This document shows, in pieces, positions 22,022-52,000 of a stretch of DNA of 64,000 nucleotides. Each line of letters begins with the position of its first letter. The first letter of the stretch is position 1. The translations under genes were made by a program, and so were the position numbers. A model generated the notes under the pieces. It was not told where the DNA came from. It worked only from the letters and a program-made list of their open reading frames with translations, and did no database searches. The stretch comes from Macrostomum lignano (Eukaryota): the NCBI GenBank assembly GCA_002269645.1, contig NIVC01003329.1:39833-103832 (forward strand), written 5' to 3'.

Positions 22022-22785
22022 TTCCCAATTTATACCAGTGCTAGGGCAATATACTCAGCAACAGTCAAAAGTTCCACCCACCAAGCGAGCTGAAAATTTT
22101 CTCACTTATTGCGACAAATTCTCACACACAATTCAACCCTCAAGTTACGCAACTAAGCCGCGGCGAGGAAGGGAAAGTGGACTGTATCAATAACTTGTAA
22201 TAAACGTCAGTCGCACAAAATCATAAATTTTTTAATGCAATATTCAGTTAGAATCGCGATGCTTAATAACGCGTGCAGGATCCCCTCGCATGCAGAAGTG
22301 CGCGATTCTGCGGGGCATCCTCAGGATGAGGCGGCGCAGAGAGTCCTGGGGGAAGCTGCTGCCAAGCGTTTTCAATGGCATGACGCAGCTCCGCAACATT
22401 CTGTGGTGGATTCTCTTTTCGAATGCTACGTTTTAGGAAGTTCCAGACATGCTCAATGGGATTCATGTCTGGGAACCGGGAAGGCCAGCGCAGAGTGCGC
22501 AGCTGTAGCTGTTCCTTCAGTTGACTAACAGCATCGGCTCGGTGTGGCGGCGCGTTGTCCTCCTGGACCATTAAGCAGACCCAAGACACCCCCAAGTGGC
22601 AATAAGATTTGTTCGTGCCGTAAGTTGCGTCACTCGCAATAAGTGAAAAAATCATCATCTCAGTGGGGTGGAACTTTTCACTGTTGCTGAGTATAAATGC
22701 TTGAGTGACTTGTTTATTAACCAAGGCGAAGCCGAGGTCAAGGCACGAAAGCATTTTTGCCCTAGCACTTGGTATTAATGGGGAA
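22022..22785. mobile_element. MITE-like element with long imperfect inverted arms and TA flanks
   Basis: TTCCCAATTTATACCAGTGCTAGGGCAA..TACTCAGCAACAGTCAAAAGTTCCACCC..CACTTATTGCG (22022-~22160) is mirrored at ~22615-22785; TA on both sides. Confidence 0.55.
22263..22570 (-). pseudogene. 3' fragment of a Tc1/mariner DDE transposase
   Basis: QEDNAPPHRA...WPSRFPDMNPIEHVWNFLKR...NVAELRHAIENAW...ARGSCTRY*; two compensating frameshifts near the end. Confidence 0.9.
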
Positions 22786-30103: not shown

Positions 30104-31031
30104 CTGCCTGTTCTGTGTTCCTGAGGCCCCCGACTTCAAGTTGAAACTTTAAGAAGTGTTTCCACTTGGCCCCATAATCGCATGATGTGGTTGGCGAAAC
30201 GATTATGTATAGTGCCTAATAGTAGTTGTATACTCGTAGTACCGTGTTTATAAGAATCGTACTCAGACCGAACTGTTCTCAAGCCTTTCCAGAGTTCCTT
30301 GCCTGTGAGAAAGTTCAGTTTTTTCATCTGTACATTCGCTAAGATTATGAGAGGCTTTCTTGGGTTCTCGTTCGTCTCTGCGGACACAGCTTCAAATACA
30401 CAGCTCACGCTCCAAGTACTTTCTATTGTGAAGCAAATTACTTTCGAATTCCAAGAAAACAGAAACAACTGTTTTGAGCTCAACTGTCTCTTTCAAATAA
30501 TTTCTTTATTGCCTGTAGTTTTTTGACACGTACACCCAGGCACACAAACTCTGTCTCGCTCTGTGCGTTCTCTTTTGTTCTTGTCAATCACCTGGCCGGC
30601 TCAGCGGAGCGCTCGCATAGCAGAGTTTGCGCAAGAGTACATGCCGATGGGGCTGCGTCTGCGTTTCATGCAGCTTCATGCATCCAAAAAAACATGCCGA
30701 TTCGGGTCCTTAGTCGGAGATTTTTTAGCGCGCTGACAAACTTGGAGAAAGTTTAATTGTTCAAGAAAAGAATGCAATTTCTGTTAGCTGTCAGATCTGT
30801 TTCCTCGGTGAGTCACCAATGATTCCCGGCTCAATCCCAGGTGGGTTGGGCTATTCAATAATTGGTTTGATTTTATTGGCTGTAATTGCAGCTCACCCAG
30901 GGAGCAGTTGGTAGGCATCATTGGCTAAGCTATCGATTTCATATTGACAGACCATAAAAGGCGACTTCAGTCTCGAGTAAACAAGAGACTTGGACCGAGC
31001 TCACTGTTCCGGTTGTTCTCAGCACATCGAA

Positions 31032-34000
31032 ATGGCGTCTTGGCAGCAGCAGCAGCAGCAGCAGTCGAAAGCCGAGCTGGGAAAGCTCCGACGCAATGCA
31101 CTGGTCTCCTTTGCTGAGAACACCTCAGCCCACGGAATCATGCACCTGACCCGGGGCTCAGGGGTCAGCCGCTTCATCTGGGTGGTGGTGATCGTGGGCG
31201 CCTGCGCCGGCTTTGCTCTGCACCTCAATGAGCTGGCCCAGCGGTACCTGAGCTACCCGGTGAGCACCGAGTTCTCCAGCGAGGGCGCCGACTTTCAGTT
31301 TCCGACTGTGACCATCTCCCCGACCTACTTCATCACTTACAACACACCTGCAATTGAAAGCAATTATTCAGTACCGGGTGAGGGTGCGATGCCTTGCCAG
31401 TGTGAGCAGATGGTTTTGCATATCTTTACGCATTTTAACTGCATGAAATCTCGCTTCTCTATGTAGGGCATTCCAGAAACCTGAACCAGATGATCTTCGA
31501 CATCGCGCTGCTGTTCTACCAGCTGAAGCTGGACAACTGGAACGTCTCCATGCCGCCGGAGGACTTTGACTCGTATTATGACGGAAAGCTGGGGCTGCGG
31601 TCCCTGGCATATCGAGGAGTTCTGTTCCAGCTGCCGCATGAGACGGTCATCTACTGCCGGTACAACTCGGAGCCCTGCTCCTATGAGAACTTCACCGTCT
31701 ACAAGGATGAGGACAGGTGAGAACAGAGTCAGATTTCATGTTAGTTAGAGAACTTTCAAAACTCTTCATACGAAAGTTAAACTAAACTTCAGGTTCATGT
31801 GCCTGTCCTTTAATCCACTGAACCGGACGATCACGCAAGCTGGTGAGGGCAGCGGGCTGTACTTAGTGCTGTACAACTACGGCTTCTCGTTTCTCACCAA
31901 TGCGGAGCTGGTGGACAATGTCCCCGGCTTCCGCGTGGCGCTGCACGAAAAAGGTAAGGCACTGTGCGATCCTGCAAATACGACGCAAACGCTTCATTTA
32001 CGATTCTAGGCCACAGTCACGTTTTCATCGGGCTAGCTTTGAGGGTTAGGGTGGTCGCGAGCTCGGTGCATTGGACGTCTGCATTTAATGACTTTCTCTA
32101 CTGGCAAATGCGGTCAATGCGGTCGTTCTATGCACAAGAGCTGAACCCGCCAGCCCCCGCACAAAATGCAGGCTTCAAGCCCGACATGGTCTCAAGCTTC
32201 AACGCTCTGTTCGGCTACAAGACCTCGGCCCAGGTGACCGTGCAAAGCGAAACGAAGGTCAATCGAGCGGCCGCGGCGTGCACTGAGGACCTTCCGAACG
32301 TCACCTACACGGGGAACTTCTCGATGCCTGGAAACTACGAGAACCAGAGCTTCTATGGAACAACTGAGGACTGCGTCATCAGAATCATGCAAGAGGAGTA
32401 CCGCAACACCTGTAGCTGCTTAGGAACTCACCTGCCGCTGCCTACGGACCTTATGAACGACACTGAAGTGTGCCACATGCTGCCTGAGGAGGTGGGGCCA
32501 TTGTACTCTGGTACAGAATAGTTAACAAAGCAGAAGAAATAAAATAAGCAAACCAGTCACGACAAACTTTGTTGCACTTCATTTCCAATGCAGGTGTTTT
32601 TCTTCGACATAAGGCATCGAAAAAACGCTTTGAACATGACGGAGTACATCATCACAAATCGGAGCTGGGTGTACAACACACTGACCGAGTACCTGCAGCA
32701 GAACTGGGACGTGTACAACCGCACTGCGCAGCGGGTCAAATGCTTCCACCGAGTGCTGCAGCGCCAGAAGACGCATGGCGTGTGGGCCAAGCAGTGCCCG
32801 GTTCGCTGCAGCAACACCCGCTACAGCGTCACCACCGGCGTGTCCACCTGGCCCCGTGACACAACGCTGGCGGTGGTCGCCGTGAGGGACTACGCCACCG
32901 AACTGCTCAAGAAACTCGCTCGCACCAACCTCTCCAGCTCGCGGCCGCAGATTCTGCACGACTACACTTCTTACATGATTGACAAAAAGTTCATCAGCGT
33001 GCTGGATCTGTACCCCAAGACCACCAAGATCAGCGTCTTCACCGAGTCGTTTGGATATCCTCTGAGGAATTTTTTCTCGGACTTAGGTGGCATTCTCGGT
33101 GAGTCCTAGCAGTTACCTAAATGTACGAGTAATCGCACCAAAACCTTTTTGGCCAGGGATTTCTTGACAAGTCTCGGGAGAACGACAATTTTCTGTCCCA
33201 GGTTGACGGCCACAATTTGACTGCCGACGAATTGGGAGCAATAGTGAGGCCTAATGCGAGCCTACGGGAATAGAGCCAGAGGGAATCTTCTTAGTGTAAA
33301 ACTAGCAATCTAGTGCGGCCCCCCTTCGGGGCGCCCAATAAGCACAGAGCAAAAATAGTTAATGGAAAACAATTAAAAAAGCACATTTTCTTAAACACCA
33401 ATTCCTTCTTAACTTTTAAAAATCACCTTATTCATGTAAAATTGTCACGGACAATGATATTTGCTATGAATCTATTTTTTTCTAAAATTAACAAATATAC
33501 AACAAAATATAACTTTCACAAAGATAACAGACATTACCCCTAAATAGAAAATATTCCCAAGACAGCAAGCATCCCTCCAGATCGCAAGCACCCCCTCCAA
33601 AGGTAAGCAACCGCAGATAGCAAGCATCCCCTAATACTCGTAGCAAGCATCCACCCAGATAGCGAGCATCCTGCAGACAGCAAGCATTTCCCAAATATTG
33701 TAGAATCATCCACCCAGATAGCAAGCATCTGCAGATAACAAGCATCCCCCAAATATTGTAGAAGCATCCACCCAGATAGCAAGCATCCCCCAAATATTGT
33801 AGAAGCATCCACCCAGATAGCAAGCATCTGCAGATAGCAAGCATCCACCCAGACAGCAAGCATTTCCCAAATATTGTAGAAGCATCCACCCAAATAGCAA
33901 GCATCTGCAGATAACAAGCATCCCCCAAATATTGTAGAAGCATCCAGCTAGATAGCAAGCATCCCCCAAATATTGTAGAAGCATCCACCCAGATAGCAAG

Positions 34001-37000
34001 CATCCCCCAAATATTGTAGAAGCATCCACCCAGATAGCAAGCATCTGCAGATAGCAAGCATCCACCCAGACAGCAAGCATTTCCCAAATATTGTAGAAGC
34101 ATCTACCCAAATAGCAAGCATCTGCAGATAACAAGCATCCCCCAAATATTGTAGAAGCATCCAGCTAGATAGCAAGCATCCCCCAAATATTGTAGAAGCA
34201 TCCACCCAGACAGCAAGCATCCCCCAGATAGCAAGCATCCACCCAGACAGCAAGCATCCTGCAGATACCAAGCACCCCCCAGATATTGTAGAAGCATCCA
34301 CCCAGACAGCAAGCATCCCCCAGATAGCAAGCATCCACCCAGACAGCAAGCATCCTGCAGATACCAAGCACCACCCAAATATTGCAGAAGCATCAACCCA
34401 GTTAGTAAGAATCCATAAAAAGCAAACATCCCTAGATAGAAAGAATCGCATACATATAGCCAAGCTTATCAAGCGCAGTAATCCTTTGTTTGCCAAGCGC
34501 AGTAATCATTGGTTTATCAAGTGCAGTAAGTCTTGGTTTATCAAGTGCAGAAATCCTTGGTTTATAAAGTGCCGTAAGTCTTGGTTTATCCAGTGCAGAA
34601 ATCCTTGGCTTATCAAGTGCAGTAAGGGGGTTTATCAAGTGCAGTAAGTTCTGGTCTATCAAGTGCAATAATCTTTAGCTTATCAAGTGCAGTAAGTCTT
34701 GGTTTATCAAGTGCAGTAATCCTTTGTTTATCAAGCGCAGTAGTCCTTGGTTTATCAAGTGCAATAATCCTTGGTTTATCAAGTGCGGTAAGTCTTGGTT
34801 TATCAAGTGCAATAATCCTTGGTTAATCAAGTGCAGTAATCCTTGGTTTATCAAGTGCAGTAGTCCTTGGTTTATCAAGTGCAATAATCCTTGGTTTATC
34901 AAGTGCGGTAAGTCTTGGTTTATCAAGTGCAATAATCCTTGGTTAATCAAGTGCAGTAATCCTTGGTTTATCAAGTGCAGTAATCCTTGGCTTATCGAGT
35001 GCAATAATCCTTGGCTTATCAAGTGCAATAATCCTTGGTTTATCAAGTGCAATAATCCTTGGTTTATCAAGCGCAGTAATCTTTGGCTTATCAAGTGCAA
35101 TAATCCTTGGTTTATCAAGCGCAGTAGTCCTTGGTTTATCAAGTGCAATAATCCTTGGTTTATCAAGTGCGGTAAGTCTTGGTTAATCAAGTGCAGTAAT
35201 CCTTGGTTTATCAAGTGCAGTAATCCTTGGCTTATCGAGTGCAATAATCCTTGGCTTATCAAGTGCAATAATCCTTGGTTTATCAAGTGCAGTAATCCTT
35301 GGCTTATCGAGTGCAATAATCATTGGCTTATCAAGTGCAATAATCCTTGGTTTATCAAGTGCAATAATCCTTGGTTTATCAAGTGCAATAATCCTTGGTT
35401 TATCAAGTGCAGTAATCCTTGGTTTATCAAGTGCAATAATCCTTGGTTTATCAAGCGCAGTAATCTTTGGCTTATCAAGTGCAGTAATCCTTGGCTTCTA
35501 ATCCATAATCCAGGTCTTTTTAATTAGTTTTTTTAATAAAAGCTTTCAATAAAAAAATTATGCTACTTTTATTCTTTTATACACTACTAAGATTCGAACC
35601 CAGGTAGCTGCATTAGCAGTCCAGTGTGTTTACATCTAGGCTAGCTCTCATCTAATATACTAAAAATGGTCTGTTTGTGTGTGCGTGTGTGTGTGTGTGA
35701 TCGATTTTAGCAAAAACGGCTCAACCGATTTTCTTCGAATTTGCACCATTCGATTAGAATTTTTTCCGTGACGATACATGCATCGTGGCTAAGAAATTGC
35801 TCGATGCTAAAGGGATTAAATATTCGAAAAACATGCTTTTTTGCAAAGGTCAAGCAGCTCTTTCGACTTGAAATGCATTGTAAGAATGCTAGCAGAAAAA
35901 CTGACTGGTTGAATTCTGATTCTGAAATAGATTGCATCACAATACACTTTATTTATCGTCTGTGTACTGGCTGAATTTGACACACAATTGAATTGCGTCA
36001 CAGCTTTGAGTGTGAAAGCATAGCGCAGTACTGAATTTATATTACGTAACCATATTGTTAACTTTCATAGACACTGGTACTGACTTGCCTAAGAAATTGA
36101 TTATGTCATAACTGCTTCGTGTGACTTTTTACTCTACCTGACTTGGTGTGAGTGTTGAATTATATAAGTGGTACAACATCACTGATAACTTCGATGAGAG
36201 CTAGCCTAGAGCTGAACAGACCAGACTGCTAATGCAGCGACCTGGGTTCGAATCTAAGTAGTTTAAAAGTAGTAGTGTAAATTTTTTTATTAAAAGCTTT
36301 TATTAAAGGACTAAATAAAAACACTTAGATTACTGCACTCAATAAGCCAAGGATTATTGCTATTAATAAACCAAGGATTAATGCACTTGATTAATCAAGG
36401 ATTATTGCTATTAATAAACCAAGGATTACTGCACTCAATAAGCCAAGGATTATTACGTCAGTTTGAGGCAGGTATCTGACTCTAACTGGTTTTAAACCCC
36501 CCCCGCGCCGGCCCGGCCTCGCTTTGGTGGGTTGGTGGGGTGCTGGTGCTCTGCGTGCGTGCAGGGCTTAGGGCAGCCTCCCCCCGCTCTGTGTTATTTA
36601 GTCACGCGTCGCGGCCGCTGAGTCGGCGTAATTTTGGCAAAATATTTTTAGCCTGCCTGATTTGCCAAGCACTGCACTCACAATGGACTCTACGTTGGGC
36701 AGCATGACCGTGCAGGCCCTCAAAGATGTCTTACGCGAGAAGGCCTTACCTACAAGTGGCAATAAAGAAGAGCTGATAGGCCGCCTGCTCGCTGCAAGCC
36801 AGGCCGAACGAGCTCCCAGCGATGACGACGGTGACGACGACCAGGACGAGGATGACGTGCGCCGGGCTGCGCCAGCGGAGGAGGCCACAGAAGCGCAGAT
36901 TCGGCAGACTCAGAAGAGGATCGAGCTGCTTAAACTGCAGAAGGCTGAGGCCCAGTTGCGGGATGAAGTGCAGTCGATCCGCAGTGGCGCCGCATCGCCC

Positions 37001-40000
37001 CCGCTGGCCAGAGGAGGGCCGGACATCTACGCCAGCCTGTTCGGGACCAGAGCCGACAACCGAGGTTTGATTCGGCCGGAGCCCAGCGGCCCCCATCAGC
37101 GCTGCTCATCCCGGAATTTCTGGACGAGAGGCAGCAGTCGGGAGGATGGCTGACACAGGAACGTGGTCGCCTGACTCTGAAAGGCGCAACGCCGAGCCTG
37201 TCCGGAGTCAACTTCGGCCAGTGGGTGGCTGCCAACGCGCGGATCATGCAGCGACTGCTGGAGACCGGCCAGCTGGTGGCGCCCGGTACGGATGGACAGC
37301 CCGACTGCAAGAGTCTGAACGCCTACCTCAACTTTAACATCCACATCGGCGAGCTGCTCGACGCTGGCTACGACTGGAAGGTGGTGCTCCAGTACGACCA
37401 GGACATGAGGCTGCAGCAGCACTCGCGACAGCGCGACTGGGACAGCCCCGATCTGAACCTCATCATCAAGCATATGACGGCGCCCAAAAACCTGCGAGCT
37501 GCTGGCCCAGTCGCGGTCGGTCAAGGAGTCCAGGGTCACCGTAGCAGGGGCCAGCTGTCATCCGCTGGACAGGTCATCTGCGGCTTGTTCAATAGCAACA
37601 AAGGCTGTCACAGACACACCTGCAATTTCGCCCACATCTGCCGCATCTGCGAAGGGAGCCACTCAAAGCTGCAACACAGCTCGGTGGCTGCCGAATCAAA
37701 AAACTGAGCAAAGAGGCGGGTCGCGGCGGCACCAGTTTTAGCCCTAAGCGGACGGCGTCTGATAGACAGTCCAAAATTTTAATTCCATGCGAGACAGCTG
37801 CTCGCACTGCCACTGGCCCTGCCGCTCGCCCTGCCACTCGCCTTGCCGCTCGACCTGCCACTCGCCCTGCCGCTCGCCCTGCCTCTCGCCCTGCCGCTCG
37901 CCATGCCACTCGCCCTGCCACTCGCCCTGCCGCCGGCCCTGCCGCCGGCCCTGCTGCCGGCCCTACTGCCGGCCCTGCTGCCGTTCCTGCTGCCGGCCCT
38001 GCTGCCGGCCCTGCTGCCGTTCCTGCTGCCGGTCCTGCTGCCGGCCCTGCTGCCGGCCCTGCCGCCGGTCCTGCTGCCGGCCCTGCTGCCGGTCCTGCTG
38101 CCGGCCCTGCCGCCGGTCCTGCTGCCGTTCCTGCTGCCGGTCCTGCTGCCGGCCCTGCTGCCGGCCCTGCCGCCGGTCCTGCTGCCGGCCCTGCTGCCGG
38201 TCCTGCTGCCGGCCCTGCTGCCGGCCCTGCTGCCGGCCCTGCTGCCGGCCCTGCTGCCGGTCCTGCTGCCGGCCCTGCTGCCGGTCCTGCTGCCGGCCCT
38301 GCTGCCGGCCCAGCCGCCGGCCCTGCCGCCGGTCCTGCTGCCGGCCCAGCCGCCGGCCCTGCCGCCGGTCCTGCTGCCGGCCCAGCCGCTGGCCCTGCCG
38401 CCGGCCCTGCCGCCGGCCCCGCTGCCGGCCCTGCTGCCGGCCCTGCTGCCGGTCCTGCTGCCGGCGCTGCTGCCGGCCCTGTTGCCGGCCCGGTGGCTGC
38501 ACTCCGAAAACGTTGGCCGCTGTTAACTGCTGCTTGGACACCAGTCCTGCTCGGAGACTCGGACGCGGAGTTTCTGATCGCGGGAATTCGCGATGGCTTT
38601 CGCATCACCGACGCGGCTCCGACCAGCGAATCCCAGCTCGAAAATCATGCATCCGCCCGCTGCGAGGCAAATCGGAATGCCGTTGAGCTGCAGATCAGAG
38701 AGGAGGTCGTGGCTGGCCGGTACATCAGCGCAACTGACTTGGGCATCGCCAGGCCGACCATCATCAGCCCACTGGGCGCCGTCCCGAAGGCAGACGGCGC
38801 CATCCGCCTGATTCACGACGCGTCCGCGCCACAGGGCAACAGCCTCAACGATCTGTACAAGCCCCGCCAGAAGATGAAGTTTGCCAATGTCGAGGATCTC
38901 ACCAGGCAGCTGGCACCAAGCTGGTTCATCAGCAAGGTCGACCTACGCCACGCCTACCGAAGTGTTCAGGTGCACCCAGACTGCTATAAGGCGACGGGGC
39001 TCCGGTGGACGTTCGAGCTGGACGGTCAGCCCACTTATCTGGTTGACACGCGACTCCCATTCGGTGCGGCGGCATCAGTCAACATTTTCCACCGCCTAAC
39101 GCAAGCTGTCAAGCGCTTTATGTACAGGCAATTCTCGCATCTGTCCAAATTCGTCGTCATCGCATACCTCGACGATTTCTGCATAGCTGCCCGGGACTAC
39201 GAGGTCTGCCTGCAGCTGCACAATTTTCTGCTGGTCACCCTGCAGCGCCTCGGCTTTGAGATCAACTGGGCCAAGACGCAGAGCCCAGCCACTTCGGTCA
39301 CTTTCCTGGGTGTGCAGATCGACACATTGACTGGCCTGCTGTCACTGCCCGCCAAGAAGATGGACGGCCTTCGAGAACTTCTCCAGGACTGCGCCAACTC
39401 GAAGAGCCTGCAAAAACGTCGCCTTCAGCACCTAGTCGGCAAACTGAACTGGTTCTGCAAAGTGGCCAAACCTGCAAAGGCCCTGCTTCGCGCGCTCCTG
39501 GAGATAACCATCGCTATTCCTGAGCAGCATCATCGAGTACCGGTGCGCGGCGAGCTACTGGCCCAGTTGCAGTTCTGGCAGCATGCAATCCCAGTGTTCC
39601 CGACCGACAAGCTGTGGCGGCGTGCACGAGTGCTGGCAGCGGTCGAGACGGACGCCTGCGTCAGTGCCGGTGGCATGATCCTGAGCACCTCTGATGGCCA
39701 GCGCGAGTTCCGCCTCGTCGACTTCTGCAGTGACGCCGGTGGCATCTTCCTGAGCGAGCACATCAACGCCAAGGAGACGGTACTGCCGCTGCTCGCCATC
39801 ATTCTGTTCCAGGAGCAGCTGGCCGGCGGCAAGGTGGCCTGCTACGTCGACAGCAGCGCGGCGGTCGGCACCATCAACCGCGGTGCCTCCAGCAACCCGA
39901 TCGTCATGACCCTGCTCAAAACGGCCACTCTGGCAGCGCTGAGGCACGACTTTCAGTTTCGAGCTCACCATATGCCGGGGTCCTGGCAGCTGCTGAGCGA

Positions 40001-43000
40001 CCCGCTGTCGCGCTGCCTGACGCATCCCCGCCACATGCTGCTGTTTCTGCTGCGCTACTTCGGCCGGGCCAAGGCGCAGCCGGAAGATCTGCGCAGGGCC
40101 TGCCTCAATGAGTCAACGGCGGCCCGGTTGCTTGAGCAGGCGTCGCTCGCGCTGAGCCCCGGTCTCTGGCGCAGTTCTCGAGCGGAGCGAGTTGCGACGG
40201 CTGAAGCAGATCCCGAGCTCAGGTACGAGTCTTAGAGCTATTGCTTGGACCTGGCTTTTTTGGCTTGGTTTAATTTTTTCTGCGGCTCGTTGATTTGATT
40301 TTACACGCTTGTCTCCTTCTCCCTCTTTCTGTTGGTGTTGGGGTTCGTTTTCCCTTTCTGGGCCGCGTCTGCCGGTCTTTTGTGCCACTTGCTTTTACTC
40401 TGCGTTAGTCTTTTGGGGTTTAATACGTCAGTTTGAGGCAGGTATCTGACTCTAACTGGTTTTAAACCCCCCCCGCGCCGGCCCGGCCTCGCTTTGGTGG
40501 GTTGGTGGGGTGCTGGTGCTCTGCGTGCGTGCAGGGCTTAGGGCAGCCTCCCCCCGCTCTGTGTTATTTAGTCACGCGTCGCGGCCGCTGAGTCGGCGTA
40601 ATTTTGGCAAAATATTTTTTTCTTTTAAATTACAAAATCAATATATTTCGTCGCTTAAGGGGTTCGTTTTCCCTTTCTGGGCCGCGTCTGCCGGTCTTTT
40701 GTGCCACTTGCTTTTACTCTGCGTTAGTCTTTTGGGGTTTAATGCTATTAATAAACCAAGGATTACTGCACTTGATTAATCAAGGATTATTGCTATTAAT
40801 AAACCAAGGATTATTGCAGTTGATAAGCCAAGGATTACAGCGCTTGATAAGCCATGGATTATTGCAGTTGATAAGCCAAGGATTACAGCGCTTGATAAGC
40901 CATGGATTATTGCACTTGATAGTAAAGAATGTTGCACTTGATAAGCCAAGGATTACTGCACTCGATAAGCCAAGGATTATTGCTATTAATAAACCAAGGA
41001 TTACTGCACTCAATAAACCAAGGACTATTGCTCTTGGCAAACCAAGGATTACTGCACTCGATAAGCCATGGATTATTGCTATTAATAAACCAAGGATTAT
41101 GCACTTGGCAAACCAAGGATTACTGCACTCGATAAGCCAAGGATTATTGCTATTAATAAACCAAGGATTACTGCACTCGATAAGCCAAGGATTATTATAA
41201 GCCAAGGATTATTGCTATTAATAAACCAAGGATTATGCACTTGGCAAACCAAGGATTACTGCACTCGATAAGCCAAGGATTATTGCTATTAATAAACCAA
41301 GGATTACTGCACTCAATAAACCAAGGACTATTGCTCTTGGCAAACCAAGGATTACTGCACTCGATAAGCCATGGATTATTGCTATTAATAAACCAAGGAT
41401 TACTGCACTCGATAAGCCAAGGATTATTGCTATTAATAAACCAAGGATTACTGCACTCGATAAGCCAAGGATTATTGTAAACCAAGGATTACTGCACTCG
41501 ATAAACCAAGGATTATTGCTCTTAATAAACTAAGGATTACTGCACTCGATAAGCCAAGGATTATTGCTATTAATAAACCAAGGATTACTGCACTCGATAA
41601 GCCAAGGATTATTGATATTAATAAACCAAGGATTACTGCACTCGATAAGCCAAGGATTATTGCTATTAATAAACCAAGGATTACTGCACTCGATAGCCAA
41701 GGATTACTGCGCTTGATAAGCTTGGCTACATGTATAGGATTATTTCTATCCAGGGATGCTTGTTATTTAGGGATTCTTGCTATGTGCAGGATGCTTGCTA
41801 TCTGGAAGGATGCTTCTACATTATTTGGGGGATGCTTGCTATCTGGAAGGATGCTTCTACATTATTTGGGGTATGCTTGCTATCTGCAAGATGCTTGCTA
41901 TCTGCAAGATGCTTGCTATCTGCAAGATGCTTGCTATCTGCAAGATGCTTGCTATCTGCAGATGCTTGCTATCTGGGTGGATGCTTGCTAGGAGTATTAG
42001 GGGATGCTTGCTATCTGGGTGGATGCTTGCTAGGAGTATTAGGGGATGCTTGCTACTGGGGGGATGCTTGCTGTCTTGGGAATATTTTCTATTTAGGGGT
42101 AATGACTGTGATCTTTGTGAAAGCTATATTTTCTTGTCTGTTTATTAATTTTACCAATCTTGTTGGCGAAGCCTTCTGCAAAAACATCTTAGTTCTTATC
42201 CTTTTGACTATAGCTTTGAACTGTTCTGTCATTATTCGATAATTCGTTGGAAATTAATAAAGACGATATTGTTCAGTTTAATAGACTAATTTAGTTTAAT
42301 TTAAAACAAATTTATTGTGTCATAACTGCTTCGTGTTAGTAGTAGTAGTAGCAGCGATTGTTTTAATCAACTCGAATGATTGCATTAGGTCCAATTTCAT
42401 TTCAGTCAGAACTTAGTATGCATGATTCTCTCAGATTCCATTTTGCTAATACGTGTATTAGATTTTTCGTTGCAAATTAATAAAGACGATATTAAACAAG
42501 AAAGGGTAACACATTTTCTTTTCAAGATATTTTATTCTCAAATAAGATTTATTTAAGAAATCTTAAATAAGCATAAGCAGGCTGCTGCTGTCACTTGTGC
42601 TTGTCCGAGTTGTCCGGCCGTTGCTTGTGCTGCTGCTGTTGCTGCTTCTCCTGTTGCTCCTGCTGCTGTTGCTGCTTCTCCTGCTGCTTCTCCTGGCGGA
42701 CGTAATTATGTAGTGAATTGCATTTCGCCACTTTGTGGTTGCCTCCGCAGAAGTAACAGGCCACAGCTATGAAAGGAAGTAAGGATGGTTAAATTGTTAA
42801 TTTTAGAATAAAAACAGTATGTTTAATTGGTTGGCGATTGATTGGTTTGTTTGCTGCTCAGAGTCAAGAGGAAGAAAGAAAGCAAGTTCTAGGAGGTTAG
42901 TGATTAAATGATAAAGTAGTAACCCACAATACGTGCAATACTTACGTTTTCGGGGATGGCGCGGGCGGCGCTGTTGACTCTCTACGATAGTTACTTTCAT

Positions 43001-46000
43001 TGAGTATGTTAAATATGTAATCCAAATATACTGAATAAATTTATTACTTTTGCTTTTTGGATATCTTAAGTTGGCGTAGAGTAAGAATCTACAATATATA
43101 TATATATAGCAAAACTTTCTGGGGTGGGTTGGTGCTGGCCCAACCCGATTGGCCGTTTCGTGTGGGGATTAGCCACTCAGGGCTGAGGTGGACAAATGAA
43201 GCTAAGCAAGAGTGACGGCAGTGGCTGGACGGGTTGGGGCTGAGCTATGCACGGCTTAGGAGTGAAGCTCACACAGGTCAGAGAGAAGGGTGAGAGCGCA
43301 GTTTTGGTTGGGTGACTTAAGCCAAGCTGGGCCTGGGGAGATTGAATCAAAACCAGTTTGAAGCGGTAAACAACACAGAATACCCTGCACTTTTTAATTG
43401 TTGCTACTTTCTTAGCCATTGCAATGACTCAGGAGTAAACTCCGGGGTTATGGTTGATTGCAAGTAAGAATTAGGAGGGGTGGTGGAGATAGGCGCGAGA
43501 TTATAGAGCTAATGAGACGGCGGGTATAAACAGAGAAAAGAATAAGAAGACTGAATTAGATGAAAAAGGGTGAGAAAATGGAGTAAGCACAGACAAGTTC
43601 AGATGAACTGGATAAATGACTAAGAAAGTTAATGCTGCTTTTCATGAGTGTGAAAAACGATAAGTCGCAGACAACGAGGGGTTGGTCGTGGGAGTTCAAT
43701 TAGCATCGTGTGATCACGCCACAAGGTCCAGAGTCCACCCACCCCAGCCGATTTAGTCTGGAAACGAAGAGATTGCACAGGGAGGGAGTGTTATCTGTGT
43801 TCTGATTGGCTGTTTAGTTGTGTGGGGTTGACTGCTGGTGATTGGGGTGTGGGCTTGACTATTTAAATTGAAATGGATTGCAAACTGTGAGTTTAACCTG
43901 CTATTTCTACTGAAGTATTTTGCACTGCAACATTTCTAGAAGCTCTTTCTATTTTCTAAGTTTTGTTTCTACTTTGTTAAAACTGTTAAACTGAACAACT
44001 AAGCTACAATGGCGTCTACAATCACCAAGAAGATTAAGGCAAATATCTCTGGCCTGAAACTGGGCTACATGAATGCGGCGGTTACTGGCCTTGTAACCGA
44101 TTTGAAGGAGATCAGGTCCTACATGAAGAACGACGTCCGAAGCGAAGTTTTTTCATTCGTCTTGGTAGACGACTCGGCTGAGATGAGAGTCAGCGTTTTC
44201 GGCAAGGACCTGCGGTCTATTTGGGAAGTTTGCAATACTTCCGATGCTGTTCGGATAGCCGGCGGAATGGTAAAGACTTCGGATCCGAGATACAACAGCA
44301 CGAATAATCCTATGGAGGTGTCTCTTTCTGTTGACTCCAAGGGATCAATATTTCGAAGCAATGAAGTTCCGACTGTTAGTGAACGGGCGTGTAACTATAC
44401 GCGAATAAGCGACCTTCAAAACGTACGCCTGCAAGAGTGAGTTGCATTGTATCTATACTTGTATTTATTGTATAGACACAGTATACAATATTATTATATG
44501 TAAAATAGACATAATAGTATAGCATATTGGAAAATAGAGAATTGTATAGGCAATTGTGTAGCACTGTAGTGTATGTTCGGCTTTTATAAATTATTTTGAC
44601 TAGATTAGCAATCTATTGTATGCCTTCATTCCTTGATGTTGGCTAGACTAGCAGTCCATTATATTCATTCGTCTATTGATGTAGGTAGGAATAGGATTCA
44701 AATGAACTTCAAAAGGCGTTTTTGAGGTTTTAAAAGACTTTTAAAACTGTCCCCTCTGTATTGCCTTTTATTAGAAATGTCGATGTCCTTGGAGCAATCG
44801 ACGCACTGCAGCCGCCCGAGGAAGTCATGACGAAGGCTGGGAAGCGGATAAACGTAGCCAAAGTGACTCTTGTTGACCAGTCCTGTCGTTCTGTCTCCTG
44901 CACATTTTGGGGGTCGTCCTCCGATCAAGCTGTCAACTGGAGTGTCGGCGACATTTTGTCGATACGACGAGCAAAAGTACAAGAGTACGCTGGCGCTGTT
45001 GTACTTGGATGTACTGGCTCTGAAGTTCGGCTCAACTCGGACGACACCGAGGTTACGAATTTGACTGACTGGTACACGAATGCTAAGCAGAGCGATACTG
45101 AGTTTCAACCTCTGGGTGCTCCGTGTCCATCAGGCGCGGTTGGCGGCTCTTCTGACCAAAGGGGAAGCAACAGGTGAGTTATTATGCAACTACCGGTATC
45201 GCACGAATCCTTCCGGGATGTAGACGAAATTGTCTTGGACTTTGGAGAAGGAATAAAGGTGCGCGTGTTCATTGTACATGTAACTTATTTAATGTTTAGT
45301 ATCTTTCTGTAGTACAGATCTATTCACTCTAAGTTGCTACAGTATTGTATATTACTCGGTCAAGAATGTATAAAATTCAGTTTTAAGCAAACTTGTAAAT
45401 TTTTGTTTATTAATTTTACCTTTCTACAGAAACTATACAGACTGGTGCCGTCTTGTGAGAGCCAACTCGAGTCAACACGAATCGACTGGAGTACGCAGGC
45501 TGATGAAACAAGCAGAATGTCATGCGAAGATTTCTCTGGCAGTTCAAGAAATCAGTGAGTTATTGAAGCACATGTGTTGAAAAGCCATCACAAGTAAATT
45601 TTAGCATGGAAAAAGAATTGCTACCTTGGCCCTACATGCTAAAATTCCTGCTGCATTGGCACTGGCATGAATATGAAGTACCTTTAGATTGGGTGCGTAA
45701 GTCAAAATTGGAGACTGAAATTTAGGATATGGGGTATTTAAGATATAGTTGGACTGATGATACCTTAATTGCAGTTTTGGTAATCCAATAGCAAGTATCT
45801 AATTTTCCCTTCTCTTCCCTTCACTTCTATGAGTGTCTTCGACTTGTACTGTGCATTCTAAGAATCCCTTCCACAGTGCATTCTAAGAATCCCTTCCACA
45901 GTGCATTCTAAGAATCCCTTCTACAGTGCATTCTAAGAATCCCTTCCACAGCATCTGACAATGCCAGCTAATAGGATATCTGAGAATGTCAGCCAATGGG

Positions 46001-49000
46001 ATTTCTGAGAATTTCAGCTAATGGGATTTCTGAGAATTTCAGCTAATGGTATATCTGAGAATGTCAGCTAATGGGATTTCTGACAATGTCAGCTAATGGG
46101 ATTTCTGACAATGTCAGCTAATGCGATTTCTGAGAATTTCAGCTAATGGGATTTCTGACAATGTCAGCTAATGGGATTTCTGAGAATGTCAGCTAATGGG
46201 ATTTTTGAGAATGTCAGCTAATGGGATATTTGACAATGTCAGCTAGCTATTGGGATATCTGAGAATGTCAGCTAATGGGATATCTGACAATGTCAGCTAA
46301 TGGTATTTCGAAGAATTTCAGCTAGCTATTGGGATATCTGAGAATGTCAGCTAATGGGATATCTGACAATGTCAGCTACTGGTATTTCGGAGAATTTCAG
46401 CTAGCTACTGGGATTTCTGAGAATGTCAGCTAATGGGATATCTGACAATGTCAGCTACTGGTATTTCGGAGAATTTCAGCTAGCTACTGGGATTTCTGAG
46501 AATGTCAGCTAATGGGATTTCTGAGAATTTTAGCTATCTTCTTTAGAACATTAAGGGTGAGGTGTTACATTATCGCAGGGTGTATTTTTGCCACTGCCAA
46601 TGTTGATAGCAGGCTGGCTGCAGACGTGCTGGGCCTGACAGAGAGTTGGTTGAAATGGACATTTCGCTGCTTTGTATGTCCCTGGTAGATTTCTTCCACT
46701 CTATTACGTGGGCCAATCCAGAAGTTCATGGTAATTACCGGTGCATTTGTGCAGATTAAGGAAGGGATTTTGTTATGTCTGCTCGTTAGAATAGAATTTG
46801 AATTCTACTAATTTGTGAAATTATTGGACTCATTTTCCAGGCGATATGGAAATTCAATCAAATAATGTTCTGATTGTGGGTTGAGCCGGAGAAAGTCGTA
46901 ATAGTTGGATGATAAAAGCTCAATAAGAGTCCTGTCCCAAAGCGATAGGAAAATTCTGATTGATTTTCTGATTGAGGGGTTGAGCCAGAGACAGTCTTGA
47001 TAGTTCAGTAAGAATCCTGTCCATATTCTGCTGAGGGGTTCGGCCAGAGAGTCTGGTAGTGCGGTGAGAGAAGCTCAAATTGGCAGCTTTTTGTGGTGGG
47101 AGAAATTTTCTGATTGCATGAACTTTTGGAATGGCCCTCGTACATGCAAATGCAGCCAGAGGGGGTTGAAGCAGCCTTTGCAAACCCCAGATAGTCTGTT
47201 GTGATGGCTTTAACTCTGCCGAAGCCAGTCCCAAGCCTGGTTGCAAAAAGAGGAGGGTTGCAAACTGTTCTTACATGCTCATTAGTAATGCCTGAAATTT
47301 ACATGCCCCAAGTGAATGCCTCTGTCCAGCTGTGCAGACTAAAGCAAGCCAACAAGTGGTAAGATTGACACCAATGAAAAATTCTTAACAGAATTTGTGC
47401 AATGGTACCATCTTGTTGGCGAAGCCTTCTGCAAAAACATCTTAGTTCTTATCCTTTTATGACTTTGCAATTGTAAATATACGGAGTAAATAAAATGACT
47501 ACTTGCATTTGATTGCGTTTTTAAATTTGCTATTAACATTACAGTGCAGAGTTTTTCTTGTTTTCGTCTGAATACGCAGAGGAAAGGATTATTGAGTACT
47601 AATTAATGGGAGACTGCTCCCTAATTTGTGACTGTAAAGAAGAATGAAAATTTTATATACTAAAATATTTATTGTCAGCCATTCTGACTTTTTGTTAGTT
47701 AGATTGCTTCAAATGTACAGGTCTGGGTGTGTGATCAATATGGTAGCTGCAGGTTGCAGTGTTTTACATGTACTTTAAGTATATGTAGTTATGAGCGTAG
47801 TATATACTTTGTTGTACTTGTTTCCGCTAATGACTGACTGCGCCCCTCTCCACCGGCTGGGGCGCAAATGAAGAAGTTATTCCGACACTGTACGTTGCTA
47901 AGTACACTGGCGTGTCCCCCCTGGGGGAATGGGTAGGCGTATATGATAGTACAGTCTTGTCAGGCAGCTAGAAAAGTTTGGTTGAGAATTTTTTAACAAG
48001 CCTCTTTACTGGGGCGCCAACGATGTCGAATTTTTTCCAAAGCGCAGTACATGCTAAGTACACTGGCTTATGCCCCCTATTCCCTATTATCTGGGGTAAT
48101 GAGAGTGAAAGCGGCCCAAGCACAGGTTCGTTTTTATTACGTTAAAAATCTATACATTAATCACACACTTGTTTCGCAGTTAAGGAATTAATCAAGTGGA
48201 GTTGAATATGTCGATGAAAAATTTAGTGTAGGAGTCGCACAGATATATTGCATCAGTTAACCAGAGCTGTGAATCCATGTATTTCAAAGTTGTATGCATG
48301 ATTTGCAAAATGGGTCAAACCAAAGTCGTAAATAACTTACTAGAGTTGAGTGGCGAGTGACTTAAAATAAAATTTCGTTTTAATTACCGTATGAGAGAAT
48401 AAAGATTAAAAGGGTTAGGAGCACATGCAAACTGCAAAAAAGAACTGTAGCTAAAAGGAAATTAGGCTGTGGGAAAATATTGGTATTTGAGTCGCAATTT
48501 TAAAAGTACAAAAGTACAAAATCTAAATTACGGAAACAATACTTTTAACAAGTCAAACCAATTAATTATACGTCATTGTACTAGGCAATATCCACTATCA
48601 AATAACCACACTGGCTCCAAATACAATAACATTGTCGACACAATGTTTTTGTCTGTAACCGTTAAAACAGTTAACAGCAGACATCATTAAAATTGGTGCA
48701 ACGCCAGTGACTCCCTGCATGATAGGCAACTGTTGCCTTTGGCCTTTGGGAAACAAATTTTTTTTAGCTGTAGTTGCTTTTCCAGCCGTTGCAGAGCGTA
48801 CTGCTTGCACCGCAACAGAAGTAGTACGCTATTGCTCTGAAAGAAGGCAAGTAGGTTGAATTGTCAGTTTTTTAAATTCTACACAAGCATGTTTTATTGG
48901 TACATAAGCCCCAGGGCCAGAATTAAAATGAGAATTCGATTCCTAGCCCCCTCCCTAAGAATTCTTTTTATTTTAAAGGATTCGTCCCTTGCTTATTTGC

Positions 49001-52000
49001 CACCCCGAAGGGGGGCGCTAGATTGCTAGTTGAAATTATAAATGAATTTGTAGCACTTATAGTTCAACACTCACACCAAGTCAATTGAGTAAAAATTACA
49101 CGAGGCACTTATGACATACTCGTAATCAATTTCTTAGGCAAGTCAGTACCAGTCTATTAAAGTTAGCAATATGGTTACGCAAGATAAATCAAGTATTGTG
49201 CTATGCTTCCACACTGCGTTTTCGATACTGTGACGTAATTCAATTCAGTGTCAAAATTCAGCCAGTACAGAGACGATAAATAAAAGCCTATTTTTATGAT
49301 GCAATCTATTTCAGAATCAGAATTCAACCAGTCAGTTTTTTCTCTAGCATTCTTACAATGCATTTCAAGTCGAAAGAGCTGCTTGACCTTTGCAAAAAAG
49401 CATGTTTTTCGAATATTTAATCCCTTTAATATTGAGCAATTTCTTAGCCAAGATGCATGTACCGTCCCAGGAAAATTTCTGATCGAATGGTGCAAGTTCG
49501 AAGAAAATCGGTTGAGCCGTTTTTGCTAAAATCGATCACACACACACACACACATATACCGACAGACCATTTTTAGTATATTGGACTAGCCAATTCCAAC
49601 CCCCGTTGGGGCTTTCCGTCAGAACTCCTACCAAAGTTTTCCCACGCAAAAGAAATTCACCCAACTGAACCCCCCATCCAAAGAATCTCTCTGATGCAAA
49701 TAATCTCACATGCAAAAAACCCTCATCCAAAGAATCCCCATACAAAGAACCCCCCATCGACAGAATCCCCGAATCCGAAGAATTCCCCATTCAAGGAATC
49801 CTCTATCTGTAGAATTCCCTATTTAATGAATCGCCCATCCATAGAATCTCACATGCAAAGAATACCAATCCTTCCCGTCCCATCCCCATCCCATCCCATT
49901 GATAGAATCCCCGATCCGAAGAATTTCCCATTCAAGGAATCCTCCCATCTGAAGAATTCCCCGTCCAATGAATCCCTTATTCAAGAAATCCCCCATCCAC
50001 AGAAACCCTCTATCCAAAGAATCCCCCACCCATCCCTATCCAAAGAATCGCCCATCCATCCCTATCTAAAGAATCCCCCATCCATCCCTATCCCAAGAAT
50101 CCTCCTATTCATCCCTATCCAAAGAATTTCCCCATCCATTCCTATCTAAATAATCCCCCTAACCATCCATATTCAAAAAATTCCTTCTCTAAAAATCCCC
50201 CTCTAAAGAATTCACATCCTTAAATAATCCCCCATCAAAAGAATAATTGGCCAAAGAATCCAGAATCCCCTCATCTAAAGAACACCCGTTCAAATAACCC
50301 CCATCTAAAGAATCATTTATCTAAAGAACCCCCCATTCAAAAAACCCTCCATCGAAACAATGCCCCACCGAAGAAATTGCCCAAAAATTTATCCATTAGA
50401 AGCATCCCTCATCCAAAGAATCATCAATCCATAGAATTCCCCCAAGACTTAACATCTCAGCAATTTCCCCAAGCCTCGACACCTCAGAAATTTTCCCTAA
50501 GCATTGACATCTAAGCAGTTCCGGCGCAAGCCTTGACATGATACCAATTTCTCCCCGTCCAAAGCCTTGACATCTCAGTAATTCCCCTCCCCAAGCCTTG
50601 ATATCTCAGTAATTCTCCCAGTAAGCCTTGATATCTCAGTAATTCCTCCAGTAAGTCTTGACATCTCAGCAATTTCTCCCCGTCCAAAGCCTTGGCATCT
50701 TAGCGATTCCCCTCCCCGAGACTTAAGACCTCAGCAATTCCTTTTTAAGCCTTCACACCTCAGCAATTCCCCCCACAAGCCTTGACATCTCAGCGATTCC
50801 CCCACAAGCCTTGGCATCTCAGCAAGTCCCTCTTAAGCCTTCACATGTCATTAATTCCCCAAGGTAAGATTTTATACATGTATCTCAATAATTCCCCTTG
50901 TAAATCTTGACATCTTAAAATTCTCTTCCGAGCAAGCATCCCCCAAGAGCAAGCGTCCTTCCGATAGCAAGCATCCCCTGATAGAAAGTACCCCCAGCAA
51001 GATTAGTGAAGCAATTTCCTCAGCTAGCCAATTCCAACTCCCGTTGGGGCTTTCCGTCCAAACTCCAGCCACAGTTTTCCTACGCAATAAAATTTCACCC
51101 AACTGAATCTCCCATACAAAGAATCCCTCATCCAAAGAATACACCACCCATAAAATCCACGATACAAAGAATCTCACATGCAAAGAAGCCGCCATCCAAA
51201 AAACCTCCCATCGATAGAATCACCGATCCCAAGAATTCCCCATTCAAGGAATTCTCCTATCTGAAGAATTGCCCATCCATAGAATCTTACATGCAGAGAA
51301 TCCCCATCCAAAGAACCCCCATCGATAGAATCCCCGATCCAAAGAATCCCCCTATCCATCCCTATCCAAAAAATCCCCGACCTCCATCCATATCAAAAAA
51401 TCCCCCATCCACAGAACCCCTATCAATAGAATCCCGGATCCAAAGAATTTCCCATTCAAGGAATTCTCCTATCTGAAGAATTTCCCATCCAATGCATTGC
51501 CCATCCATAACATCTCACATGCAAAGAATCCCATTCAAAAGAATCCCTATTTAAAGAATCATCCACCCATTCATATCCAAAGAATCCCCCATCCATTCCT
51601 AACTAAAGAATCTCCCTCCAAAGAATCCCCATGCAAATAATCCACGTCCAAATAATCCCCATCCACAGAATCTCCATCCACATTATCCATTGATTCTCCC
51701 ATCAAAAGAATAACTGGCCAAAGAATACCTTCATCTAAAAAACCCGTTCAAAAAATTCACGTCCAAATAATCCCAATCAACAGAATCCCCCATTCAAGGA
51801 ATCCAAAGAATCTCCCATCCAAATAATCCGCCCATTAATAGAATTCTTGGCCAAAGAATCCCCTCATCTCCTCGAGATATCCATTAGAAGCATCTCTCGT
51901 TCAAAGATTCCCCAATCCATAGAATTCCCCCCCCAAGACTTAACATCTCAGCAATTCCCACCAAGCCTTGACACCTCAGAAATTCACTCTTAAGCCTTGG

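Follow-up and report, generated by a model that had tools for sequence, protein, structure and literature searches.

Helitron transposition is a rolling-circle process that passes through a single-stranded or circular intermediate; the capture of gene fragments is common in the Helitrons of maize and bats, and some RPA proteins of plant Helitrons may carry domains of the zinc-knuckle type. Genes for RPA-like proteins have been recorded repeatedly as accessories in the Helitrons of plants, cnidarians and fishes and likewise in Helentrons (PMC6431247, PMC11417382), and two described systems are of particular relevance here. In rice, the "mother element" DHH_Mothra is a Helitron rich in tandem repeats that carries an RPA gene only, without the Rep/helicase transposase (RepHel), and for which a transposase from a sister family has been proposed (Roffler, Menardo & Wicker 2015, PMC4683698). 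In the mite Metaseiulus (Galendromus) occidentalis, Helentron-Mo-1A encodes a 358-aa RPA with only two DNA-binding domains (DBDs), DBD-A and DBD-B (Thomas, Vadnagara & Pritham 2014, PMC4067079). Here we consider a stretch of 64,000 nucleotides from the flatworm Macrostomum lignano (GenBank assembly GCA_002269645.1, contig NIVC01003329.1, positions 39,833 to 103,832, forward strand), hereafter the window, in which a gene for an RPA70-like protein and a gene for a zinc-knuckle mini-protein stand head-to-head inside a canonical Helitron, named E2, devoid of RepHel.

We consider it probable that the two genes form an accessory-gene module of an M. lignano Helitron family, met here in a non-autonomous, RepHel-less copy that is itself decaying, and that the mechanism they belong to, the handling of single-stranded DNA (ssDNA), operates at the level of the family. 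This reading is built on the gene structures and folds, the Helitron ends with their empty insertion site, the lack of Rep/helicase, the conservation of the pair among loci and the decay of the window copy.

The gene pair and its Helitron carrier

Besides the window, both genes were found at the loci L001, L002, L003 and L005, and L004 holds the RPA gene without the knuckle gene. The features of the pair and of its carrier, by strand, are as follows.

42591-43000, minus strand: zinc-knuckle mini-protein gene, 76 aa; exon 1 43000-42946 (ATG at 43000), exon 2 42766-42591 including the stop
43001-44008, no strand: divergent-promoter spacer of about 1 kb, with ATTGG and TATA-like motifs on both sides
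44009-45177, plus strand: RPA70-like two-OB gene, 276 aa here; exon 1 44009-44436, exon 2 44775-45177 including the TGA at 45175-45177
45178-45558, plus strand: RPA coding remnant beyond the stop, by comparison with the relative P0001 and L002; rest of exon 2 (to 45260), intron, exon 3 (45430-45558)
35651-49029, plus strand: non-autonomous canonical Helitron E2, 13,379 bp (9,090 bp minus a nested retroelement), carrying the gene pair
35651-35667, plus strand: 5' terminal sequence of E2, TCTAATATACTAAAAAT, conserved in the form TCYWATATACTAAAAAT in five elements, among them the Rep/helicase carrier in L001
48999-49029, plus strand: 3' terminus of E2, a GC hairpin (CCCC-GAA-GGGG core), 12-14 nt and the terminal CTAG

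The first two exons of the RPA-like gene join in frame through a GTGAGT...AG intron, and the product matches the Pfam domain REPA_OB_2 at 1.2e-17 and, over residues 24-275, the RPA70 DBD-A/B chains of fungal and human origin in the PDB at 1e-21 to 6e-17. In the AlphaFold model of the intact relative P0001, two OB barrels are predicted with pLDDT >90 (residues 11-260), followed by a low-confidence or disordered tail, and the best Foldseek matches of this model are RPA70 AB structures (4gop_C at 6e-19; 1jmc_A with a target TM-score of 0.81). Furthermore, F64, Y95, W188 and Y214 align to F238, F269, W361 and F386, which stack on ssDNA in human RPA70, and these positions are aromatic in all three M. 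lignano subfamilies. For the N-terminal OB domain (DBD-F) and for DBD-C with its zinc ribbon the comparison was negative, as only the A and B domains align and Pfam Rep_fac-A_C gives no match; the flatworm protein, 346 aa in its intact form, does not present the four-domain architecture of RPA1/RPA70.

A preliminary description of this DNA, made from its sequence alone, had recognized the two DBD-A/B-like folds and the strong divergence of the protein, and both the domain matches and the Foldseek search that it had proposed agree with it. It had also presented the gene as spliced and free of stops as far as 45173: the splicing is confirmed, but the frame is closed by the TGA at 45175-45177, and 45173 is an AG/GTGAGT site (a slash marks here, as below, a boundary). 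This apparent donor overlaps the TGA, which is private to the window copy (codon 277) and reads CGA (Arg) in L002. A gene model of 325 aa, with 45173 spliced to 45430 in another frame, was discarded, since the relatives keep the family frame to 45260 and use a different phase for exon 3. The remnant at 45178-45558 corresponds to the 70-aa C-terminal tail of the intact 346-aa relatives. As a separate observation, a conserved motif approximating D-[DE]-x-hydrophobic...RM...[RK]-[IV]-R-[LV]-R-[FC]-G follows the OB folds in P0011, P0015, P0024 and P0162, that is, in subfamilies 2 and 3 and in Logan sequences; it is weaker in the family of the window, where the stop removes it, and it lies in the part modelled by AlphaFold with low confidence.

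The exons of the knuckle gene fuse in frame through a GTAAGT...TCATAG intron, with AATAAA signals past the stop, and in the product a basic stretch leads to a single zinc knuckle, after which comes a tail of low complexity, rich in Q and E. The knuckle is spaced CX2CX3HX4C, one residue under the canonical CCHC arrangement (C-X2-C-X4-H-X4-C), in the window, L002 and L003, and the canonical X4 occurs only in the subfamily of L001 and L005. At E<=10, the window protein had no match to the Pfam family zf-CCHC (PF00098), nor to any sequence in a search of 5.8 billion proteins. Judging from its sequence, the window product is knuckle-like, though not a member of the zf-CCHC profile; of the CCHC knuckle protein announced in the preliminary description, the spliced knuckle gene stands and the CCHC spacing does not.

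In the spacer, ATTGG occurs at 43805 and 43841 and TATTTAAA near 43861 on one side, and ATTGG at 43148 and TATATATA at 43094-43107 on the other, while a box of the CTGATTGGC type is found again between the genes of the pair in L001 and L003. The CCAAT-like and TATA-like motifs reported earlier are thus present, but their count (3 observed against 2.2 expected after shuffling) is not above chance.

The boundaries of E2 are A/TCTAATATACTAAAAATGG on the 5' side and, on the 3' side, the hairpin followed by CTAGATTGCTAG/T, the 3' end being composed of ...GCCACCCCGAAGGGGGGCG-CTAGATTG-CTAG with its last base at 49029. Two identical 3' termini (the CCCCGAAGGGGGG hairpin, CTAGATTGCTAG, then T) occur in the window, ending at 49029 (plus strand) and 33302 (minus strand), and the 5' motif TCYWATATACTAAAAAT occurs at 35651 (plus), 49585 (minus) and 53436 (minus). 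The design of hairpin and CTAG recurs in the neighbouring elements E1, E3 and E4, in L001 (twice), L002 and L004. Moreover, the homology of E2 with L002 and with E1 breaks off exactly at the 3' CTAG, in three different flanks. E2 lies between ...CTCTCA/ and /TTGAAATT, inserted between A and T without target-site duplication, and its excision in silico gives the joined flanks ...CTAGGCTAGCTCTCA/TTGAAATTATAAATGAATTTGTAGC..., which align across the junction to uninterrupted paralogous sites (L001 5890-6010, window 36270-36150 and window 52440-52560). It follows from the empty-site alignment that E2 measures 13,379 bp with both ends supported, in accordance with the intact ends claimed for it beforehand.

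The 5' TC, the 3' CTRR after a GC-rich palindrome and the A/T insertion without target-site duplication are those of a canonical Helitron (HLE1). As to the features of Helentrons or Helitron2 (HLE2), no inverted repeat joins the 3' subterminal region of E2 to any upstream site, the insertion is A/T and not T/T, and a fused endonuclease was not seen in the scanned open reading frames (ORFs) of L001 and L005. The 64-kb window contains neither an ORF nor a tblastn remnant of a Rep/helicase (HUH Rep, PIF1-like), and L002 contains none; the lack of a RepHel ORF, already noticed before, is therefore confirmed, and the E2 copy is non-autonomous.

Related loci and the decay of the window copy

Nine protein clusters of M. 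lignano, with five intact 346-aa models, are 58-94% identical to the window RPA-like protein, in a search that brought up proteins of this species only. Canonical RPA1 proteins, from scattered eukaryotes, match it at about 1e-20 with 22-31% identity (search of 1.84 billion representative proteins). In a maximum-likelihood tree the flatworm RPA-like proteins form one clade (support 0.999), whose sister is a 354-aa RPA, P0060, of the mite Galendromus (Metaseiulus) occidentalis (SH-like support 0.875). At such a distance from canonical RPA1 the protein does not stem from a recent capture of the host gene, and the analysis supports its assignment, on sequence grounds, to an old and divergent two-OB RPA70-like lineage. 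Near-identity to host RPA1 and a single genomic copy had been named in advance as reasons to dismiss the pair; the phylogeny points away from the former, and the family is multi-copy.

Concerning the genomic copies, a look-up through P0001 was empty and a search with exon 1 only gave no contig-level ORFs, and the other copies were reached through NCBI-sourced members of the protein clusters. Since the GenBank gene models for this assembly derive from an RNA-seq-guided assembly (PMC5730564), the members of the RPA-like family are supported by transcripts through their annotation. Repeats make up more than half of the M. lignano genome, simple or tandem ones accounting for about 15%, and duplication is heavy (PMC5730564). 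The M. lignano "REPA_OB_2 domain-containing proteins" that we examined are transposon genes, not replication factors. In another flatworm, the trematode Calicophoron daubneyi, the 4,022-aa protein P0010 (CAL8082275.1) matches the RPA-like protein in 26 stretches (E 2e-209) and probably represents RPA-like OB units in tandem or a fusion of Helitron genes.

At L001, L002, L003 and L005 the pair is head-to-head, with the pre-knuckle intron in the same position as in the window. One plan is common to the five loci, although the DNA of some of them is mutually unalignable: after a basic stretch and an intron placed 3-4 codons ahead of the first Cys comes C-x2-C-x3/4-H-x4-C, and the tail is of low complexity. 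The closest locus, L002 (NIVC01000254.1), matches the window at about 99% identity over the whole length between the RPA gene and the terminal CTAG/T, both included, beyond which an unrelated flank begins. Leftward the similarity drops to 95% in the spacer and to 87% in knuckle exon 1, and knuckle exon 2 can no longer be aligned, a steep rise in divergence over the knuckle gene between copies otherwise 99% identical. Even so, this exon of L002 retains the coding sequence for ...KCYFCGGPHRVARC with a Q-rich tail behind it, and the 13 knuckle codons differ from those of the window by 4 synonymous and 3 mostly conservative changes, with the ligands retained. The RPA exon 2 of L002 is broken, with 2.2 kb inserted and 33 bp deleted.

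The loci L001 and L005, on two scaffolds, represent subfamily 2, with an RPA 47-49% identical to that of the window and a knuckle partner characterized by CRFCLRRGHIAAEC, a basic stretch, an RS tail and the intron in the same place before the knuckle. In the L001 element Helitron_like_N (3.6e-46) is accompanied by a PIF1 that is truncated and by an OTU match that is weak, and L005 shows a full helicase, Helitron_like_N and OTU. In particular, L001 shares with E2 the 17-nt 5' motif and ends in the hairpin and AGATTGCTAG, so that the RepHel element with the same terminal motifs, which the preliminary description had suggested looking for, does exist, in the other subfamily. A 2.7-kb contig from the Logan run SRR24204725 (L003) contains the pair, with CYLCAGPHPVRRC then a Q tail and an RPA about 42% identical, and the 3.5-kb Helitron of L004 (subfamily 3) contains an internally deleted RepHel and an RPA gene 34% identical at the protein level; a knuckle gene was not found in L004. 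The RPA gene lies within Helitron termini in the window, L001, L004 and, for the 3' end only, L002; terminal motifs were not found in the 21-kb stretch of L005.

Some further insertions were observed at these loci. RPA intron 1 of subfamily 2 (L001 10434-10827) includes, besides repeats resembling TTAGGG, an entire Helitron 3' terminus, whose hairpin and CTGATTGCTAG/T end at 10779, hence a small Helitron or a fragment of one within the intron of an accessory gene, and intron 1 of the window RPA gene has a degenerate look-alike of it at 44603-44616. In L002, a 393-bp insertion (15735-16127) that is not in the window copy, with TGTAG...CTACA at its ends and, apparently, a duplicated GTAC, looks like a miniature inverted-repeat transposable element, and the interval 297-1992 contains a Harbinger-type DDE_Tnp_4 ORF and a MADF ORF.

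With regard to selection, the RPA genes of the window and L002 have eight coding differences, 7 non-synonymous (the window stop included) and 1 synonymous, and the exons (99.0-100%) are no more similar than the introns (99.4-99.7%). Within subfamily 1 the ratio of non-synonymous to synonymous changes comes from this one 99% pair and from few changes, too few for a real test. Taken together, the equal similarity of exons and introns and the excess of non-synonymous changes indicate that the two copies are recent and unconstrained. Intact ORFs under purifying selection, as expected of an active copy, are not what we find; because of the private TGA at codon 277, the 7:1 ratio and introns conserved as well as exons, the window copy is probably a decaying passenger and not an active helper.

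The Helitron array around the carrier

Between 33 and 60 kb the window is AT-rich and filled with minisatellites, and this block is flanked by GC-rich genes (two cytochrome P450s, an amiloride-sensitive channel and exons for Ig domains). The additional features within it are the following.

33302-35650, minus strand: 3' part of E1, an older non-autonomous Helitron that hosts the E2 insertion; 3' hairpin then CTAGATTGCTAG/T at 33302; contiguous with 49585-49030 once E2 is removed
49030-49585, minus strand: 5' part of E1, beginning with TCCAATATACTAAAAATGG at 49585, immediately after the CTAG of the next upstream element
36455-40743, plus strand: retroelement nested in the E2 24-mer minisatellite, with a SAP-domain Gag-like ORF, a reverse transcriptase and split direct repeats
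40744-42153, plus strand: internal minisatellites of E2, periods 24/48 and 18/41 bp, continuing the array of 36328-36454
45851-46536, plus strand: 25-bp and 79-bp minisatellites inside E2, 3' of the RPA gene, present also in L002
42152-42205, plus strand: left copy of a 54-bp direct repeat that flanks the gene-pair module, 98% identical to 47406-47458
47406-47458, plus strand: right copy of the 54-bp direct repeat, the only one in L002

E1 amounts to 2.9 kb (49585-49030 plus 35650-33302), and E2 is inserted in it in the opposite orientation; the internal minisatellites of E2 are also found in E1, in the same order (35527-33483, minus strand). The elements E1, E3 and E4 follow each other head-to-tail on the minus strand with exact CTAG/TC junctions at 49586/49585 and 53437/53436, an arrangement that occurs twice in L001 (6417/6418 and 20797/20798) and that corresponds to the pattern expected from rolling-circle concatemers or circle junctions. 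An additional Helitron 3' end lies at 51024, within a satellite block. About 25 kb of the window thus consist of a nested and tandem Helitron array, which is relevant to the annotation of this genome. We had also considered whether a unit of about 550 bp (49032-49585 and 36190-35654) was a separate element and whether a segment starting with TCGATGAGAGC was a Helitron 5' end; both are refuted by the exact CTAG/TC junctions and the empty site, from which it follows that the actual 5' region is this unit read in reverse complement. A tRNA-like box, GGTTCGAATC, noticed by eye near 36230 and 35600, had neither an ARAGORN nor an Rfam match.

The nested retroelement is 4.3 kb long (Pfam RVT_1 8.6e-18, SAP 1.4e-09), and its split repeats pair 36447-36649 with 40417-40619 (203 bp, 99%) and 40340-40424 with 40659-40743 (85 bp, 100%). 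In appearance it is DIRS/PAT-like; neither a recombinase nor an integrase ORF was seen in 36455-40743. The 54-bp repeats enclose a 5.2-kb segment with the gene pair and could be the scar of a recombination or template switch at the acquisition of the module.

Outside the array, a fragment of a Tc1/mariner-type DDE_3 transposase lies between host genes at 22263-22754 (minus strand, Pfam 1.6e-10). By eye, from ORF translations only, two paralogous cytochrome-P450-like genes of two large exons each could be noticed at 14085-15649 (plus) and 28152-30139 (minus), and, on the same basis, an ASC/ENaC-like channel gene whose end lies some 190 bp short of 33302, the first Helitron terminus.

The proposed role of the pair and comparison with described systems

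If the pair is an accessory module of its Helitron family, a Rep/helicase supplied in trans would peel off a single strand by rolling-circle transposition, the best candidate sources being the elements with OTU, RepHel, RPA and knuckle genes at L001 and L005. The RPA-like protein would then coat and protect the displaced strand through its conserved aromatic stacking residues, and beside it the basic knuckle protein might act as a nucleocapsid-like single-strand chaperone or bind the terminal hairpin.

Several observations weigh against this interpretation. Mobilisation by elements of the L001 and L005 type is assumed, given that the termini are similar only and the RPA 47-49% identical, and no RepHel element of the window's own subfamily was met among the loci examined, where no dedicated search for one was made. 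The knuckle protein is matchless, oddly spaced and missing from subfamily 3 (L004), so that it may be dispensable or not translated. With respect to the termini, the module points in opposite directions in subfamily 1 (window) and in subfamily 2 (L001 and L005), the head-to-head arrangement being kept, and the interpretation does not account for the 54-bp repeat that brackets the module. Finally, the lack of purifying selection between the window and L002, which is expected for recent transposon copies, provides no positive support for a function.

Some of these points could suit a different origin of the genes. Both could be passive cargo, fragments of host genes caught by a Helitron and devoid of a role in its life cycle: gene capture by Helitrons is known (PMC4067079, PMC11417382), the window copy evolves neutrally and carries a stop, the 54-bp repeat brackets the module and the orientation of the latter varies by subfamily. 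However, the pair is kept with intact ORFs, introns and functional residues in lineages 42-49% identical and travels with Rep/helicase in L001 and L005, and the RPA-like protein, with its five intact 346-aa models and its own clade (0.999), has its closest canonical RPA1 at 22-31% identity in unrelated eukaryotes, so that we regard mere cargo as unlikely. A host origin of another kind, in which the RPA-like family consists of domesticated or host multi-copy genes (for example germline ssDNA-binding paralogues) and the Helitron sequence is incidental, could appeal to the promoter-like motifs, introns and poly(A) signals of the genes, to their transcript-annotated members and to the heavy duplication of the genome. 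We find it very improbable, as the homology between the window and L002 stops exactly at the 3' CTAG with different flanks, the whole unit is cleanly removed in the empty-site reconstruction, and the RPA gene adjoins Rep/helicase in L001, L004 and L005, with termini in L001 and L004 though not in the L005 stretch.

The knuckle gene deserves a separate evaluation, as it could be a chance ORF or the decayed fragment of a retrotransposon Gag. It has 76 codons, about half of them a low-complexity repeat of the CAG/CAA type, and the missing matches, the spacing and its absence from L004 would suit such an origin. Nevertheless, the same architecture stands head-to-head with the RPA gene at five loci whose DNA is partly unalignable, and the 4 synonymous and 3 mostly conservative changes in the 13 knuckle codons between the window and L002 speak against a non-gene, to which we assign a small probability, slightly below that of passive cargo. 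We retain, as probable, the reading of the pair as a Helitron accessory module.

Going further, we put forward only tentatively that the knuckle and the two-OB RPA-like protein are a co-inherited ssDNA toolkit needed by one flatworm Helitron lineage, and that the carriers without RepHel are semi-autonomous helpers or competitors in trans. If this were true, the toolkit would be a new class of Helitron accessory gene, the DNA-transposon analogue of the Gag/NC of retroelements. The question bears on the way in which the single-stranded intermediate of Helitrons is protected and processed and on why many lineages independently gained RPA-like genes. The flatworm family offers a compact two-OB RPA, a conserved knuckle gene and versions with and without RepHel that have terminal motifs in common. 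With transgenesis established in M. lignano, the family should lend itself to asking whether transposition becomes more efficient through accessory ssDNA-binding proteins, and the same system could tell whether RPA-only elements help or parasitise autonomous ones.

Among the described systems, E2 resembles DHH_Mothra in being a non-autonomous canonical Helitron with an RPA-like gene, internal tandem repeats, low GC and no RepHel. Mothra has its termini in common with a RepHel-bearing sister family, the proposed source of its transposase; the 17-nt 5' motif of E2 and the 3' end with hairpin and AGATTGCTAG recur in the RepHel-bearing L001, which belongs to another subfamily, with an RPA 47-49% identical, and is at most a candidate for such a sister. 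Different from E2, Mothra is a plant element, the RPAs of plant Helitrons form their own clade, and no zinc-knuckle partner has been described for it; its RPA is not reported to consist of two OB folds only or to be paired with a divergent second gene, and the flatworm RepHel sisters also carry OTU. The RPA of the mite Helentron is like the flatworm protein in its size of about 350 aa, its DBD-A/B composition, its place beside Rep/helicase and the OTU of autonomous relatives. In contrast, the ends of E2 are canonical (TC...hairpin-CTAG, A/T), without the subterminal inverted repeats, the T/T insertion and the endonuclease of Helentrons, and the flatworm genes have introns and an identity of 27% to the mite RPA. 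With canonical RPA1/RPA70 the flatworm protein shares the DBD-A and DBD-B folds and the four aromatic positions that stack on ssDNA, but it is encoded by a multi-copy, transposon-borne gene and is 22-31% identical, and, lacking DBD-F and DBD-C, it cannot form the RPA trimer core.

The knuckle protein recalls the zf-CCHC nucleocapsids of retroviruses and retrotransposons, being small and basic with Cys-X2-Cys...His-X4-Cys, which makes a role as a single-strand chaperone plausible by analogy; the residue after the first Cys is an aromatic Tyr, as in nucleocapsids, in the window, L002 and L003, and Arg in L001 and L005. It differs from them in its X3 spacing (window, L002 and L003), the missing Pfam match, the single knuckle, the Q-rich or RS-rich tail and the lack of a Gag context.

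The preliminary description had seen in the pair its best candidate for an undescribed system, a helper-type non-autonomous Helitron that borrows its transposase, and had invoked the RPA-like proteins already known as accessories of plant Helitrons. The last point is well founded (PMC6431247, PMC11417382) and the kind of element largely holds, but RPA-only Helitrons without RepHel (Mothra, PMC4683698) and a two-OB mite RPA (PMC4067079) are in print; it follows that the helper-type element is an existing concept, and an active role does not apply to the window copy. A Helitron-encoded zinc-knuckle partner had no description in the literature searched, and the text of the HELIANO paper does not contain the words zinc, CCHC or knuckle. 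Such a partner, kept over lineages in which the RPA is 42-49% identical, looks new, subject to the domains of the zinc-knuckle type that some plant Helitron RPA proteins may carry, a modest novelty compared with these systems, and the conserved partnership of knuckle and RPA across deeply diverged Helitron lineages, underplayed in the preliminary description, is the most interesting point of the locus.

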